Origin: Octopus sinensis
Lineage: Eukaryota
Length of the DNA: 39,796 nt
Assembly (NCBI RefSeq): GCF_006345805.1
Contig: NW_021831712.1
Coordinates: 1 to 39,796 of the forward strand
Reading direction: 5' to 3'
The notes beneath the pieces are model-generated. The model saw only the letters and a program-made list of their open reading frames with translations, did no database searches and had not been told where the DNA came from. Every line of letters begins with the position of its first letter. Within the stretch, counting starts at the first letter, position 1. Below, piece after piece: positions 26,684-35,706 of the stretch. The translations under genes and the position numbers were made by a program.

Positions 26684-26968
26684 TGGTTTGGCTCAGATTT
26701 CGTCTTATTCCTGGCAGGAATTATGTGGATTACGGGTCACTACCTGTAACCTTAGGTTTCCACAGGTTTTCAGCTGGCTTTTAAGTGCTTAGGACCCTCC
26801 TGATAATCCTTGCTGCCTCTAAGAGACAAACTTTCTTCTGTAGGAGCTCTACCGGGCATTCTATTCTAATCTCCTCAGCCATTTATCTGTATCTTTGCTT
26901 ACAGTTACCAATGCACCCAATATCATAGGCACGATCTTTAACTGCTCGCATGCTCCAAATTCTTTCTA
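26684..26968 (-). mobile_element. 3' fragment of an R4/Dong-clade element
   Basis: With small frameshifts: ERIWSMRAV-KIVPMILGALVTVSKDTDKWL..ELLQK-VCLLEAARIIRRVLST*; 5' end abuts the giant (ATT)n array and 3' end runs into TAA repeats. Confidence 0.85.
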
Positions 26969-29101
26969 TTATTTATTATTAGTATTATTATTATTATTAT
27001 TATATTATTATTATTATTATTATTATTATTATTATTATTATATTATTATTATCTTATTATTATTATTATTATTATTATTATTATTATTATTATTATTATT
27101 ATTATTATTATTATTATTATTATTATTATTATTATTATTATTTTTATTATATTATTATATTATTATTATTAGTATTAGATTATTATTTATTATTAATTAT
27201 TATATTATTATTATTATTATTATTATTATTATTATGTTATTATTTATTATTATTATTATATTATTATTATTATTATTATTATTATTATTATTATTATTAT
27301 TATTATTATTATTATTATTATTATTATTATTATTATTATATTATTATTATTATTATTATTATTATTATTATTATTATTATTATTATTATTATTTATATTA
27401 TTATTATTATTATATTATTATTATTATATTATTATTATATTATTATTATTATTATTATTATTATTATTTATTATATTATTATTATTATTATTATTATTAT
27501 TATTATTATTATTATTATTTTTATTATTATATTATATTATTATTATTATATTATTATTATTAATTATTATTATTATATTATATTATTATATTTTATTATT
27601 ATTATATATTATTATATTATTATATTATTATTATTAATTATTATTATATTATTATTATATTATTATTATTATTATTATTATTATTATTATATTATTATTT
27701 ATTATTATTATTATTATTATTATTATTATTATTATTATTATTATTATTTATTATTATTATTATTATTATTATTATTATTATTATTATTATTATTATTATT
27801 ATTATTAGTATTATTATTATTATTATTAGTATATTATTATTATTATTATTATTATTATTATTATTATTATCTATTATATTATTATTATTATATTATTATT
27901 ATTATTATTATTATTATATTATATTATTATATTATTATTATTATTATTATTATTATTATATTATTATTATTATTATTATTATTTTATTATTATTTTATTA
28001 TTATATATTATTATTATTATTATTATTTATTATTATTATTATTATATTATTATTATTATTATGATTATTATTATTATTATTATTATTATTATTATTATTA
28101 TTATTATTATTATATTTATTATTATTATTATTTATTATTATTATTATTATTATTATTATTATTATTATTATTATTATTATTATTATTATTATATTTAATT
28201 ATTATTATTATTATTATTATTATTATTATTATATTATTATTTTATTATTATTATTATTATTATTATTATTATTATTATTATTATTATTATTATTATTATT
28301 ATTATATTATTATTATTATTATTATTTTATTATTATTATTTTATTATATTATTATTATTATTATTATTATTATTATATTATTATTATATTATTATTATTA
28401 TTATTATTATTATTATTATTATAATTATTATTATTATTATTATTATTTATTATTATTATTATTATTATTATTATATTATTATTATTATATATTATTATTA
28501 TTATTATTATTATATTATTATTATTATTATATTATTATTATTATTATTATTATTATTATTTTATTATATATTATTATTATTATTATTATTTTATTATTAT
28601 TATTATTATTTATTATTATTATTATTATTATTATATTATTATTATTATTATTATTATTATTATTATTATTTATTATTTATTATTATTATTATATTATTTT
28701 ATTATTATATTATTATTATTATTATTATTATTATTATTATATTATTTATTATTATTATATTATTATTATTATTATTATATTATTATTATTATTATTATTA
28801 TTTTATTATTATTATTATATTATTATTATATTATTATTATTGTTATTATTGTTATTATGATTATTATTATTATTATTATTATTATTATTATTATTATTAT
28901 TATTATTATTATTATTATTATTTTTTTTTATATTATTATTATTATTATTATTATTGATTATCATTATTATCATTATAATCTTATTATCATTATTTTATTA
29001 TCATTATCATTATCGTTATCATTATCGTTATCATTATTGTTGTTATTATATTATTATTATTATTATTATTATTATTTATATTATTATTATTATTATTATA
29101 T
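26969..29101. repeat. ~2.1 kb (ATT)n/(TAA)n microsatellite array
   Basis: Directly visible; interruptions are mostly single-base losses (tata, tttat). Confidence 0.97.
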
Positions 29102-29708
29102 TCTATGTTTGACTTTTGCTTTATATTTGTACAAGTTGGCTCCAAGTCTCACCCAGAGACCTCAAGAGACAACAGGGTTGGAAGTTCATGTTGTTGTTAT
29201 GCCTAGTGTGCCATATATTTGGGGGGTGGGGATGTTGTACTAATGAATGTCTAAAAAAAAAAAAAAAATTTTTTTTTTTTTTTTTTTTTTAAACCGAAAA
29301 TTATGGTTGTTTTAAACCTTGAGGTTACATAGAGGAGTATTTTGCGTAGGATATGAGCAGTTCCCATGAGCACTATCTTTTGAACTTCTGCCATTTTTGG
29401 GTTTCCTGGTATCTGAGTTAGGTAGCTATCAGCCCCTTTTGCTATCATTCCAGGGCACCTATGACAACAGGTATTGTTTTAGTCTTCAGCTTCCACATTT
29501 TGCTGATTTCTATTTCAAGATCTTTATATTTGCTCAGTTTTTGGTAGGTCCTGACAGATACGTTTATATCGATTGGGACAGTCATATCAATGAGGAGGAC
29601 ATGTTCTTTGTTTGAAGTCTTTCAATATGATGTCTGGCCTATTTGCATCTATCTTCCTGTCAGTTGAATGGTGAAGTTCCAGAGGAGTGAGATGTGGTTC
29701 ATTTTCAA
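29102..29708 (-). mobile_element. 3' fragment of an R4/Dong-clade element (endonuclease C-terminus + 3' UTR)
   Basis: DRKIDANRPDII..LIDMTVP..KLSKYKDLEIEISKMW..VPVVIGALGMI-type text..QKIVLMGTAHILRKIL; (ATT)n on both sides on the plus strand. Confidence 0.92.
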
Positions 29709-29828
29709 TTATTATTATTATTATTATTATTATTATTATTATTATTATTATTATTATTATTATTATTATTATTATTATTATCATCATTATCATTATCATT
29801 ATCGTTATTATTATTATTATTATTTATT

Positions 29829-30007
29829 GTCTTTGCGTAGCTTCTAATGCTGGAGATGTACTACGGTGCGAGATGTGCACTACCAGTGAACTAAGGCAAC
29901 ACTTCTTATTTTTCGAGCACTATCCAGAGTCTTCGAGCGGTTCCAAGCATTGCTGTTTTCTGAAAGTGCTACACCCTTATTGCAGCCCCTATTTGTTCCA
30001 TATACAT
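29829..30007 (-). mobile_element. Short 3' fragment of an R4/Dong-clade element
   Basis: YMEQIGAAIRV*HFQKTAMLGTARRLWIVLEK*, short 3' UTR, then (TAA)n; same subfamily as the fragment near 10200-10436. Confidence 0.85.
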
Positions 30008-30016
30008 AATGAAGAT

Positions 30017-33500: not shown

Positions 33501-34161
33501 AGGTTGTCAATCATTCCCCTTATTTCTTAAGATCTGTCCTAGGGCAACGTTATATGTCATGATTGTGTTGTTATTTCTTGTGCCATTTGAAAACTTTGGT
33601 AGTGGTTCTCTATTAACCATGTCAGTGAGCTCAATCTTGCCGAGCTCTTCATAATGTCCACTTTTGCTTCCATAATCTTTTCTCTATTATTCCACCAAAT
33701 TCTATGTCATATCTATTTTGGTTTTCTTGAGGAAGGTCTACGTTCTCCTCTTTTTTCAAATCTCTCGTCTTCGCTATTCTTTGTTTAACTTCCCCATTGG
33801 GAAGTTGATTTGCCGCTTGTACACTGGCTTCTGTGCTACTGTTACCTATTTCGTCTACATTGTTGCTGTTTTCTTTTGGTCTACCATGAGCTATTAGTGT
33901 CCTAATTTTGTCAATTTCAGTGTCAGTTAGTCTTTTGTTTTTAATTATATCTCTGCGTATATTACTTAATTTATTTGCGTCTATATATCTACGTACGTCA
34001 TTGCCTACTGAATTTCTCCATGAGATGTATGTTTGTACACTGAGGTTATTGTTTGGGTTTAGTTGGGCTGTATAAAAAGCTTTCAGCACATCTCTATAGT
34101 CCTCTCTGGTCCATTTTATACGTTTTGCTTTAGGTGGTGTTTTTGGTGGTGTCACTACAAG
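30529..34161 (-). mobile_element. Near-full-length R4/Dong-clade non-LTR retrotransposon (RT + CCHC knuckle + restriction-like endonuclease); 5' UTR and start codon missing; ORF broken by about 8-10 small frameshifts
   Basis: Consecutive minus-strand ORF pieces give: N-terminal KWTREDY..W..KLSNIRRDII; RT motifs QKGCKRNSYGCKDQLL, AWIDYRKAYDSVPH, RGIFQGDSLSPLLF, YMDD, GMDFGLDKC, YKYLGI; CRFC..ETIDHLVSGC knuckle; RHD; WDFPVNTDR..IEVSVP..KLSKYKDL endonuclease. Stop at 30691-30693 (HILRKILSM*), ~160-bp 3' UTR, (TAA)n on both sides. Confidence 0.95.
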
Positions 34162-34210
34162 TTATTATTATTATTATTATCATCATTATTATCATTATTA
34201 TTATTATTAT

Positions 34211-34377
34211 TACTATTTTTTTTTCTTTTTCAAATTTGCTTCCATTTCTTGCCGAGTGTCTTCCCGACCCCTAGGACAAAGAACCCAATGTATACTATGA
34301 GTTTCTTTGCCCTAGGGGTCGGGAAGGACACTCGGCAAGAAATGGAAGCAAATTTGAAAGAAGAAAAAAAAATAGTA
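34211..34377. repeat. Near-perfect palindrome (arms ~82-85 bp, centre GTA|TAC at 34292/34293); each arm resembles an R4/Dong 3' end running into (TAA)n
   Basis: caaatttgcttccatttcttgccgagtgtc... versus ...gacactcggcaagaaatggaagcaaatttg; both arms lead outward into TAA repeats. Confidence 0.9.
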
Positions 34378-34464
34378 ATAATAATAATAATAATAATAAT
34401 AATAATGATGATAATAATAATAATAATAATAATAATAATAATAATAATAATAATAATAATAATA

Positions 34465-35706
34465 ATTAGAAGAGGAATATCTCAGGAAGACACTCTCTCT
34501 CCACTCCTTTTCTGCTTGGAAAACAAGAAAAATAATTACAAGATTTAGGATGCACCACCCAAATCTGACATAGGTTATATATACAACATATAGAAGGTGG
34601 TACAGGCCTTTTACAGCTAGAAAACTATTACAAAATAAAACACCTTCGGACTACAAAAATACCTACTTCAGAAGCAAGGATAACTAAAACAAATAGTCGC
34701 AAAACACTAACAAAACAAAACATTGTTTTCAGTCTTTAAGGAAGCTGACAAATACAAAAGAGAAGTCATAGTATCTAACAACTATGAAGAAAAAGAAGAA
34801 ACAACAAAAGCTGTAAAACAACTGAAATACAAACTAAAACCGAAAGAGCAACGGATCGTGATAACACTGTGGCAAGCAAAGCCCCTTTATGGCAAATACT
34901 GGGTTAAACTAAACGCAAAAGAAATACACAAAGCAAAATCCCAACAAGGGCCGAGAAGCTCAGGACTCAAAGCAGAGAATAAAGGATTTTTAATTGCAGC
35001 ACAAGACCAAAGCCTCTCTACCAGAAATTACCAAAACCATTTAATGAAAAGAAATACAATATATGGGGTGGGACAAGAAGCAATAAATCATATTGTCTGG
35101 CTGTCTAGTCCTGGCTAAGAAGGAATATATTCACAGATACGACAGAGTTGGGATCTACATACACTGGAATCTATGCCAAGACTATGGAATAACAACAGAA
35201 AACAGATGGTATAGGCACACACCAGAAAAGATCACAAAAAAATGAGAAAGCAACCATACTATGGGATATGCCAATACACACAGATAGAGAAATTAAGGCC
35301 AATAGACCAGATATAGCTGTCCGAGATCATCAAGAAAATTGCTTTCTAATTGATGTATCAATACCAAACGATGACAATGTTTCTCTAAAAGTAATGGAGA
35401 AACTTTCAAAATACAAAGATAACTCGAATGTGGAACCTAAAAGCAGAAACAGTTTCTATTATAATAGGCGCATTACGTATGACAAAAATATATTCAGACA
35501 AATACATAACAGAAACACCAGGACTAACAAAAATATATAATATACAGAAAATAGTATTACTAGGCACCGCACACATACTAAGTAAAACACTTTCAATACA
35601 ATAACAATAAGAGGACCAACAATAAACCACAGCACGTACCCAAGTTACACAGAGCTGCGCTCGGTAATGCAGTGAAAACACGTGATAAAAATAAGACTAC
35701 TGAATG
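34465..35706 (+). mobile_element. 5'-truncated, internally deleted R4/Dong-clade copy of another subfamily
   Basis: Starts RRGISQEDTLSPLLFCL and jumps to the HHPKSD region; then SSGLKAENKGFLIAAQDQSL, DREIKANRPDI..LIDVSIP..KLSKYKD, LLGTAHILSKTLSIQ*; preceded and followed by (AAT)n. Confidence 0.92.

Follow-up and report, generated by a model that had tools for sequence, protein, structure and literature searches.

A bipartite nested stem-loop near the (TAA)n tail of Dong-type non-LTR retrotransposons

Dong-type elements and (TAA)n arrays in the window

The window analyzed here comprises positions 1-39,796 of Octopus sinensis contig NW_021831712.1 and holds one long element with a decayed coding region, several shortened element copies and (TAA)n arrays. 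The coding features of the long element and the arrays that accompany individual copies (lettered as in the next section) are as follows.

30710..34155, minus strand: decayed coding region of the long element, broken into ORF pieces by frameshifts and stop codons
about 31942-32669, minus strand: reverse transcriptase (RT) of the long element (Pfam RVT_1, 1.3e-11)
30710-31445, minus strand: C-terminal CCHC knuckle and PD..D..K restriction-like endonuclease (RLE) of the long element
30447..30527, minus strand: (TAA)n tail of copy a, TTA on the plus strand
26985..29098, minus strand: (TAA)n array of ~2.1 kb, tail and target of copy b (GC 0.7-0.9%)
34376..34465, plus strand: (TAA)n tail of copy e
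34162-34212, minus strand: mirror (TAA)n tail of copy e'

The coding region of the long element also gives a weak Pfam match to zf-RVT, R2 proteins align weakly with its C-terminal CCHC/RLE region, and protein alignment A1 shows conservation of the CCHC and RPD..D..K columns. It has 603 homologues at 55-75% identity, and homologues of the window elements include proteins from Exaiptasia and Acropora, genera that hold R4/Dong-like elements (PMC7998251). With an RT followed by a CCHC knuckle and a restriction-like endonuclease, and with (TAA)n as target, the window elements look R4/Dong-type from their sequence, and the original prediction, which had assigned them to this clade, agrees with its published domain order and target (PMC7998251). 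The R4/Dong clade includes Bombyx Dong and Dong-like elements of insects, molluscs and cnidarians (PMC7998251, PMC3812793, PMC3774820); like the window elements, its members combine an RT with an REL-endonuclease and insert into (TAA)n, and they are widespread in cnidarians and arthropods. The 5' end of copy c abuts the far side of the 26985..29098 array from copy b, and a palindrome at 34213-34375 carries the mirror copy e' on its left arm.

Architecture and covariation of the stem-loop

The sense RNA of these Dong-type, RLE-bearing, (TAA)n-specific retrotransposons carries a bipartite nested stem-loop of roughly 40 nt, with the consensus outer-CC / YNA / GG-N4 / UGGNU / N4-CY / C / GG-outer. 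The outer helix (8-11 bp) is free in sequence, and its closing end is formed by two conserved C-G pairs. An asymmetric internal loop follows (YNA in the 5' strand, a lone C in the 3' strand), and then a 6-bp inner helix that starts with two conserved G-C/G-U pairs and is capped by the pentaloop UGGNU; the second G of this loop (alignment column 36) never varies. The unpaired bases of the stem-loop are conserved. Copies in the window are listed below with their matches to covariance model (CM) R2, which was built solely from non-window loci (alignment A6) and searched across the 39.8-kb window.

30570..30608, minus strand: copy a, in the 3' UTR of the long decayed Dong-type element (CM R2 match 30564-30614, minus strand, E=1.2e-11)
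29135..29173, minus strand: copy b, in the 5'-truncated element 29105-29690 (CM R2 match 29129-29179, minus strand, E=2.4e-5)
26724..26764, minus strand: copy c, in the 5'-truncated element 26685-26965 (CM R2 match 26719-26769, minus strand, E=4.5e-6)
34301..34343, plus strand: copy e, in a 3'-end fragment of roughly 80 nt (CM R2 match 34297-34347, plus strand, E=7.4e-5)
34244..34286, minus strand: copy e', mirror of the copy e fragment (CM R1 E=5.4e-4; CM R2 match to the palindrome mirror arm 34240-34289, minus strand, E=0.03)
35628..35674, plus strand: copy f, decayed, of the plus-strand element 34467-35707
29862..29912, minus strand: copy d, eroded, at the homologous place a few nt past a remnant stop codon

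Beyond the five sites that match CM R2, all followed by a (TAA)n tail at a distance of 31-42 nt, no CM R2 match with E<0.8 was found in the 39.8-kb window. Recovery of copies a, b, c, and e by a model made from outside sequences establishes them as members of one conserved fold, as had been proposed. Copy a (CACUUGCC / CUU / GGGCGC / UGGGU / GUGCCC / C / GGCAGGUG) adopts the nested two-tier hairpin as its MFE fold (-26.5 kcal/mol, z=-3.3), scores 45.6 bits with CM R1, pairs at 8/8 outer and 6/6 inner positions, and is separated from its tail by 40 nt. Copy b (GUUGUCUC(U) / UG(A) / (A)GGUCUC / UGGGU / GAGACU(U) / U / GGAGCCAAC) likewise has a nested MFE fold (CM R1 37.8 bits). Two further copies lie outside the R1 seed: copy c (CM R1 E=6.4e-6), in which the inner helix GGUUAC/GUGACC is intact and the outer helix retains its distal UGUGGA/UCCACA and is eroded beside the internal loop, and copy e (UUUGCC / CUA / GGGGUC / GGGAAG / GACACU / C / GGCAAG; CM R1 26.9 bits), which has a weak inner helix. 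Copy f, described from the start as decayed (35638-35664), has indeed lost its inner hairpin, retaining the outer helix and an ACC-CAA...C-GGU frame (CM R1 2.7 bits; MFE z=-0.6). The case of copy d (29875-29897) is mixed: its position is homologous and its 5' half GCC-UUA-GUUCAC-UGGUA-GUG is retained, but the 3' strand is mutated (CAC-A-UCUCGCAC), no covariance model matches it on the minus strand, and its folding z-score is -0.2.

The main counts were taken from A5, a plain MAFFT alignment of 40 distinct sequences (window copies together with sequences taken from metagenome contigs and from six named genomes), because the model-fitted alignments A3 and A4 lean towards structure; the sequences in A5 were nevertheless themselves chosen by covariance model. 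In A5, 78.5% of cells are paired, compared with 32-45% when partners are slid, and 0/500 shuffles reached the observed pairing. The original prediction, that divergent Dong-type subfamilies share one 3' UTR fold near the (TAA)n tail and preserve it through compensatory changes, is borne out; such changes are many, with compensatory pairs at 6/6 inner positions (94% paired) and 9/11 outer positions, and the prediction holds for the four window subfamilies (30570-30608, 29135-29173, 26724-26764, and 34301-34343 with its mirror). Pair 22:50, adjacent to the closing C-G pairs, occurs as GC in 15 sequences, AU in 13, and UA in 7. Distinct strands number 27 for the inner helix and 35 for the outer, and sequences outside the seed pair as well as the seeds (95% inner, 80% outer). 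RNAalifold recovered both helices de novo from the plain MAFFT alignment, the six best covarying pairs in an all-against-all column scan all fall within the nested model, and independent loci show the same architecture in their MFE folds. Taken together, the sequences contain 42 G-U pairs, and the signal is therefore specific to the sense strand, on which all covariance-model matches lie, adjoining (TAA)n.

From the end of the outer helix to the (TAA)n tail the distance is 23-42 nt (median about 33), and from the stop codon to the stem it is 2-18 nt in many intact copies and 58-260 nt in other lineages. In Oculina, Exaiptasia, Clytia, Asterias, Holothuria, and Penaeus the fold directly follows the ORF, 28-33 nt before the tail, and the groups of named genomes that carry it are Cnidaria, Echinodermata, and Crustacea (corals to shrimps and starfish). 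The fold is therefore not universal: in a termite-gut lineage of relatives (38-47% protein identity), which also carry (TAA)n tails, the 3' UTR is of another kind and the model finds no match at the corresponding position.

A hairpin of the same architecture in a non-coding family

The window also contains two copies of a non-coding element with its own hairpin and a (TAA)n tail.

10537-11091: 555-bp element, non-coding, between (TAA)n arrays
10590..10637, minus strand: its two-tier hairpin, copy g (MFE -25.9 kcal/mol, z=-3.5)
25692-26207: second copy, 5'-truncated, 96% identical over 525 nt
25745..25791, minus strand: hairpin of the second copy (z=-1.3)

This element lacks an ORF, and its hairpin (GCCUGGUGUACCC / UU / AUCAGAC / GGGUA / GUC(A)UGAU / GGGUAUAUUGGGC) lies about 50 nt before the tail. 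It had been counted among the copies of the Dong fold (10603-10629). It does form a two-tier hairpin of its own, with the same architecture and a different sequence, but at 4.7 bits it does not match the Dong covariance model and is not a member of the fold; "same signal" therefore applies to architecture only. The 555-bp family and the Dong elements share only the (TAA)n context and a same-architecture hairpin with a G-rich pentaloop. In the second copy, a 1-nt deletion and a C>U change weaken the outer helix. A relative at L043:1340-1972 folds identically, with both sides changed in 3 pairs, so that two genomes keep the hairpin through compensatory changes. Where UACCC has become UUCCC, the matching change is found in the downstream strand (GGGUA to GGGAA) and not in the loop.

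Alternative readings, possible function, and related systems

The original prediction placed the 5' pyrimidine segment (CCC, CUC, ACCU, or GCC) in an H-type pseudoknot with the G-rich hairpin loop. All the strings quoted for it are present at the given positions and on the given sense strand, yet the pyrimidines instead form the closing C-G pairs of the covarying outer helix with purines 3' of the hairpin, and the pseudoknot is now hardly credible. The segment comprises the last bases of the outer helix's 5' strand together with the base that opens the internal loop; its CC starts the outer helix by pairing with the GG just 3' of the hairpin rather than with the loop, just as the CUC of copy b pairs with a downstream GAG. 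The upstream C-C and loop G-G are near-invariant, two C-G pairs between them can be drawn in 35-38 of 36-40 cells, and the nested model leaves the conserved loop GG without a partner, but the same two Cs close a helix that covaries at 9 further positions, and the two roles are incompatible. Pseudoknot pairs occur only between near-invariant C and G, and in 23-32 of the 40 sequences the pairs that flank them fail; columns 25/35, the only candidate pair that varies, show no association (Fisher p=0.43), and no loop column had a covarying partner in the all-against-all scan. The register even shifts among the copies cited for it (15:31 in a, 15:28 in c), and because a 3-nt stretch able to pair with a UGGGU-type loop, G-U included, turns up in a random 8-nt 5' flank in ~75% of trials, the pyrimidine-loop pairing is not above chance. 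With 3-4 of the 5 loop bases paired, the connectors of a pseudoknot would be 0-1 nt long, an unlikely arrangement on steric grounds. The downstream compensation in the 555-bp family likewise argues against loop pairing.

For the nested stem-loop, the likeliest function, plausible by analogy, is that of a template-recognition signal for the RT in target-primed reverse transcription (TPRT). This role is favored because the tail spacing is constant, the unpaired bases are conserved, the 555-bp family has its own hairpin, and UnaL2 and R2 set a precedent; a nested bipartite stem-loop recognized by an element protein for TPRT is the best joint explanation, with a probability of about 0.6. A genuine stem-loop with another RNA role, in 3'-end definition or stability, nuclear export, or termination-coupled cis-loading of the protein, is possible but rather unlikely. 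The stem starts 2-18 nt past the stop codon in many intact copies, close enough for its 5' strand to be melted by a ribosome that terminates there; however, lineages differ in the stop-to-stem distance (2 to about 260 nt) while the tail distance is constant, and the ORF-less 555-bp family retains the architecture. It is very improbable that the feature acts at the DNA level (a hairpin or cruciform in second-strand synthesis, or a nuclease site) or that recent shared ancestry of the copies, and not selection on RNA, accounts for its conservation. Within a single genome the copies are indeed related, and palindromic DNA lies nearby (34213-34375), but on the opposite strand the 42 G-U pairs would become C-A mismatches, every match is on the sense strand, 27 different inner-helix sequences from several phyla all pair, and pairing falls from 78% to about 40% with slid partners.

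Under the recognition reading, which draws on position, conservation, and analogy, the element-encoded protein would bind the stem-loop via its conserved unpaired bases and thereby bring the (UAA)n 3' end, which lies one spacer length from the stem-loop, to the RT active site, where this end could anneal to the nicked (TTA)n target strand and prime target-primed reverse transcription. Non-coding elements of the 555-bp type, unrelated to Dong and bearing a same-architecture hairpin and (TAA)n tail, might be copied in trans.

The fold has no Rfam family and matches neither R2_retro_el nor any other Rfam family, and the literature searched holds no description of it; that on R4/Dong describes a 5' HDV-like ribozyme and an N-terminal Myb-like domain and no 3' UTR structure (PMC7998251, PMC3812793, PMC3774820). 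The short Dong 3' stem-loop thus appears to be undescribed so far, and we class it with the known LINE 3' recognition stem-loops. R2 protein selects its template via the folded 3' UTR RNA, and binding depends on stem-loops (PMC11194090, PMC10499050). Both R2 and the window elements are RLE-type, site-specific, single-ORF LINEs, but the R2 3' UTR is about 250 nt long, multi-helix, and lineage-variable, whereas here a single hairpin of roughly 40 nt sits in a UTR of about 90-100 nt, and the targets are 28S rDNA and a microsatellite, respectively. In the stringent-type eel LINE UnaL2, a conserved 3'-tail hairpin is common to the LINE and its partner SINE, and hairpin and hinge are needed for retrotransposition (PMC1636434). 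Like the Dong stem-loop, it is a short 3' UTR structure just upstream of short terminal repeats, with a stem broken by a small internal loop or single bulged C. UnaL2, however, is an APE-type element of the L2 clade with (TGTAA)n-like repeats and no target specificity, whereas the Dong-type elements are RLE-type and (TAA)n-specific; the Dong motif CC/YNA/GG...UGGNU...CY/C/GG is unrelated to the UnaL2 sequence, and its role is predicted by analogy. The UnaL2 hairpin is shared with a non-autonomous partner, a part that the 555-bp family may play here.

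Dong-type elements and their 3' ends

The window is AT-rich eukaryotic DNA, dense in microsatellites, and carries seven retrotransposon 3' ends between 26.6 and 35.8 kb, all seven of which adjoin (TAA)n on their own sense strand. The longest copy holds a single ORF, now decayed:

34155 down to ~30531, minus strand: longest Dong-type copy, decayed single ORF

Pieces of this ORF encode a non-LTR reverse transcriptase (RT; Pfam RVT_1, E=1.3e-11 for the piece at 32226-32669 and E=1.6e-6 at 31942-32298), together with a C-terminal domain that 603 homologues from the databases conserve and in which a CCHC knuckle is followed by a restriction-like endonuclease motif, RPD...D...K. 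Across 27 aligned homologues, C67, C70, H79, C84, R151-P152-D153, K184 and KY show little or no variation, and the C-terminal profile can be aligned with the CCHC and KPD...D..V...KYK regions of R2 proteins. No APE domain was seen among the ORF pieces of the long copy. Dong-type members of the R4 clade have been described as combining an RT, a REL-endonuclease and a (TAA)n target (PMC7998251, PMC3812793), and since all three are present here, the R4/Dong label of the original prediction is reasonable as an assignment from domains and target.

The N-terminus of the R4/Dong clade carries a Myb/SANT-like domain without zinc fingers, which was detected by HHpred on an alignment (PMC7998251). The N-terminal piece of the long copy (33649-34155) contains a KWTREDY...W motif recognizable by eye; the Pfam Myb/SANT models gave no match in this piece, even at E<=10, the published detection having relied on HHpred and alignment. 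The 5' end of R4/Dong elements has also been reported to form an HDV-like self-cleaving ribozyme (PMC3774820), and Rfam ribozyme models found no match at the gathering threshold in the window, nor at E<=1 within 26-36 kb; the long copy may have lost its 5' end or have decayed too far. A second protein search, made with an insect-type query and aimed at the Dong elements of Bombyx and Anopheles, returned termite-gut and marine invertebrate matches only.

A nested stem-loop upstream of the (TAA)n tail

Comparison loci were obtained from an alignment of C-terminal homologues (A1), which retrieved 80 metagenome contigs. Tails of (TAA)n are present in about half of these 80 loci, a share that covers the majority of those whose downstream sequence is long enough, and in 7/7 fetched genome or assembly loci (six named genomes and one ENA assembly). 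In the metagenome contigs, a hairpin like the one originally proposed lies 50-70 nt upstream of the tail, and the pyrimidines 5' of it match the purines directly 3' of it, as in CAAUCACC-CAA-GGCUAC-UAGUA-GUAGCC-C-GGUGAUUG (contig L006). Minimum free energy (MFE) folds of 60-nt windows return one architecture in locus after locus, copy a of the window (30577-30601) included. In this architecture an outer helix encloses a 6-bp inner helix that is capped by a loop of 4-6 nt; between the two helices, the 5' strand has a 3-nt internal loop and the 3' strand one unpaired C.

An unsupervised scan of whole loci for two-tier hairpins was too noisy, and covariance models were used instead. The first, R1, built from a 16-sequence seed (A2), gives 42-43 matches in the window and loci, all in sense orientation and all adjoining a (TAA)n tail. 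It places the fold directly 3' of the ORF in 7/7 genome or assembly loci, from Oculina patagonica, Exaiptasia diaphana, Clytia hemisphaerica, Asterias amurensis, Holothuria leucospilota, Penaeus indicus and one ENA assembly, with 28-33 nt between stem end and tail.

The pairing was assessed on 40 distinct sequences aligned with MAFFT alone (A5), and from this alignment RNAalifold recovered both nested helices de novo. The nested structure pairs 78.5% of the cells of this alignment, against 32-45% when the partners are slid, and none of 500 shuffles reached the observed pairing. Pairing reaches 94% in the inner helix, where all six pairs are altered on both sides, and nine of eleven pairs are altered in this way in the outer helix; the pair adjoining the conserved C-G pairs occurs as GC (15 sequences), AU (13) and UA (7). 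Pairing is no poorer in sequences outside the seed (inner helix 95%, outer helix 80%) than in the seeds, the 5' strands are diverse (27 distinct inner, 35 distinct outer), and the top six covarying pairs in an all-against-all column scan all lie within the nested model. The fold also contains 42 G-U pairs, thus indicating the sense RNA. The compensatory changes anticipated in the original prediction are therefore present in both nested helices, and across several phyla selection has kept an RNA hairpin on the sense strand whose distance from the tail is fixed. We place the probability that the nested two-helix structure is correct at about 95%.

A second model, R2 (a covariance model, not the retrotransposon), was built from 25 non-window sequences only (A6) so that circularity would be avoided. 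Run on the whole window, it matches exactly five sites, the next match having E=0.8:

30564-30614, minus strand: copy a, E=1.2e-11
26719-26769, minus strand: copy c, E=4.5e-6
29129-29179, minus strand: copy b, E=2.4e-5
34297-34347, plus strand: copy e, E=7.4e-5
34240-34289, minus strand: e', the mirror of copy e, E=0.03

Every string quoted in the original prediction was found where it had been placed, but the claim of one fold common to all copies holds for a, b, c and e only. Copy d (29875-29897) has no model match and retains the 5' half alone, at the homologous position; copy f (35638-35664) retains the outer helix alone; and the hairpin of a 555-bp non-coding element (10603-10629) is of related architecture, with no match to the model.

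Column composition yields the consensus 5' outer(8-11)-C-C / Y-N-A / G-G-N4 / U-G-G-N-U / N4-C-Y / C / G-G-outer' 3', in which the second loop G is present in 40/40 sequences, the internal-loop A in 37/40 and the bulged C in 31/40. An A-rich spacer follows the stem, and the distance from the stem end to (UAA)n is 23-42 nt (median ~33). A further hairpin 3' of the stem-loop was considered as a conserved feature and dropped, having been seen in copies a and c and not kept in other loci.

The fold is not found in every (TAA)n-tailed relative. A termite-gut lineage has a different 3' UTR, without a model match at the cognate place. These relatives, at 38-47% protein identity, lie on contigs L041, L048, L050, L054, L056, L057, L069, L071, L075, L076 and L078, among which the 3' UTR is conserved as ..GGGGUAAAUUGCUUUGAUCUC..GAGAUCUGGACUUACCAG..CCACCUAAUA.CUAAUAGG..; its MFE fold is a stem-loop that starts at the stop codon, the copies being too similar for covariation testing. 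Three of these contigs (L041, L048 and L075) also bear canonical stem-loops, which come from other elements.

The proposed loop-flank pairing

The original prediction had paired the 5' pyrimidines with the G-rich hairpin loop, forming an H-type pseudoknot. Both of its registers, CCC:GGG (copy a) and ACCU:AGGU (copy c), were tested on the model-fitted alignment and on a MAFFT-only alignment, and neither contains a covariation-supported second helix. Pairing is confined to near-invariant C and G cells, the pairs on either side break down in 23-32 of the 40 sequences, the single variable candidate pair shows no association (Fisher p=0.43), and no covarying partner for any loop column emerged from the all-against-all scan; the pseudoknot was rejected. 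Given that only the near-invariant cells pair, that their flanks fail, and that ~75% of random 8-nt flanks are expected to hold a 3-nt complement to a UGGGU-type loop, the apparent pseudoknot reflects a pair of GG motifs, each conserved in its own right, of which the first lies in the loop and the second at the start of the outer 3' strand, both complementary to one conserved CC. Short loop-flank complementarity is expected by chance, and the real partner of the flank is the other side of the hairpin.

A family of non-coding elements bears on the same question:

10537-11091, minus strand: 555-bp element, non-coding, between (TAA)n arrays, in tail orientation
25692-26207, minus strand: second copy of the 555-bp element
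L043:1340-1972, plus strand: relative of the 555-bp family, between (TAA)n arrays, just downstream of a Dong tail

The family, ~555-630 bp long and inserted in (TAA)n arrays in two different genomes, has no similarity to the Dong copies in the comparison made with the 555-bp element. The element and its L043 relative have in common a two-tier hairpin ~50 nt upstream of the tail, made up of a 13-bp outer helix ending in CCC:GGG, a 5' UU internal loop, and an inner helix of 7 bp that contains a bulged A and is capped by a pentaloop, GGGUA or UGGGU; both partners differ between the two genomes at three of the pairs. UACCC of the 555-bp element pairs with downstream GGGUA, and the counterpart strands in L043 are UUCCC and GGGAA with a loop of UGGGU, so that pairing with the loop is directly disfavoured.

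Candidate function and other repeats in the window

Rfam 15 gave no family match in the window at gathering thresholds, and no description of a Dong or R4 3' UTR structure was found in the open-access literature searched. To our knowledge, little is known of template choice by RLE-type site-specific LINEs other than R2. Stem-loops recognized by the RT are already known from LINE 3' UTRs. The Dong-type stem-loop is like the stringent-type 3' recognition stem-loops of LINEs such as UnaL2 in being conserved, lying close to the 3' end and preceding short repeats at the terminus. Precedents are provided by the UnaL2 hairpin with its terminal repeats (PMC1636434) and by 3' UTR recognition in R2 (PMC11194090, PMC10499050). 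By analogy with these systems, we lean towards a model in which the element protein would bind the hairpin through its conserved unpaired bases and so place the (UAA)n end where it could anneal to the nicked (TTA)n strand and priming could begin.

The main rival is a different function of the RNA, one linked to the stop codon close by. In many intact copies (L026, L032, L039, L043, L066, L083, L084, L085, L087 and others), 2-18 nt separate the stop codon from the start of the stem; in the lineage closest to copy a the distance is 58-260 nt. At a distance of 2-18 nt, a ribosome terminating at the stop codon would unwind the 5' strand of the stem-loop, which could link termination to cis-loading of the protein. 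As a candidate template-recognition signal, a hairpin of ~40 nt with a fixed spacer to the tail, conserved in at least three animal phyla and rich in covariation, is a concrete minimal element suited to R4/Dong binding and TPRT assays, and a curated RNA family could be made of it.

The 555-bp family may be a counterpart of the non-autonomous partner in UnaL2-type systems, with its like architecture, G-rich pentaloop and (TAA)n context, albeit without a model match. The common architecture and context suggest that the family is mobilized in trans by Dong machinery, of which it may be a non-autonomous partner. More tentatively, and somewhat against the odds, the stem-loop, the ~30-nt spacer and (UAA)n could act jointly as a small, transferable module for template recognition by (TAA)n-targeting RLE RTs, conserved from cnidarians to arthropods and echinoderms; non-coding elements of other origin, the 555-bp family in the window and L043 among them, would have acquired a hairpin of like architecture and been mobilized in trans. 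If true, this would be the first described LINE/SINE-like partnership of the R4/Dong clade and would offer a minimal RNA tag by which cargo might be steered into TAA microsatellites. The hairpin may also explain the pile-up of short non-coding elements in (TAA)n arrays.

A (TTA)n array of ~2.1 kb with GC <1% (26966-29100) is the landing pad for several insertions, and the orientation of (TAA)n flips at ~30011-30116. An inverted duplication of ~325 nt (30117-30443 versus 34456-34780, 97-99% identical) contains a (TAA)n junction and the 5' end of a plus-strand element, and its arms, 4.0 kb apart, flank the long minus-strand element. At 34213-34375, two head-to-head 3'-end fragments (~80 nt each) of one Dong subfamily form a near-perfect palindrome centred on GTATAC, each arm having its own (TAA)n tail (34162-34212 and 34376-34465); it may have arisen by template switching or twin priming, and sub-threshold matches to miRNA models on the palindrome (34219-34369) were all that Rfam returned at E<=1. 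In the 5'-truncated element b, a run of A(15) is followed directly by T(23) at 29255-29292, between the coding remnant and the 3' UTR. A dispersed repeat with the motif GGTACTTATTTTATCGACCCCGAAAGGATGAAAGGCAA, which had no matches in 100 shuffles, occurs at 15755-15792, 26355-26392 and 26563-26600 (all minus strand), with a diverged copy near 35800-35845 (plus strand), and appears to belong to a further short interspersed element.
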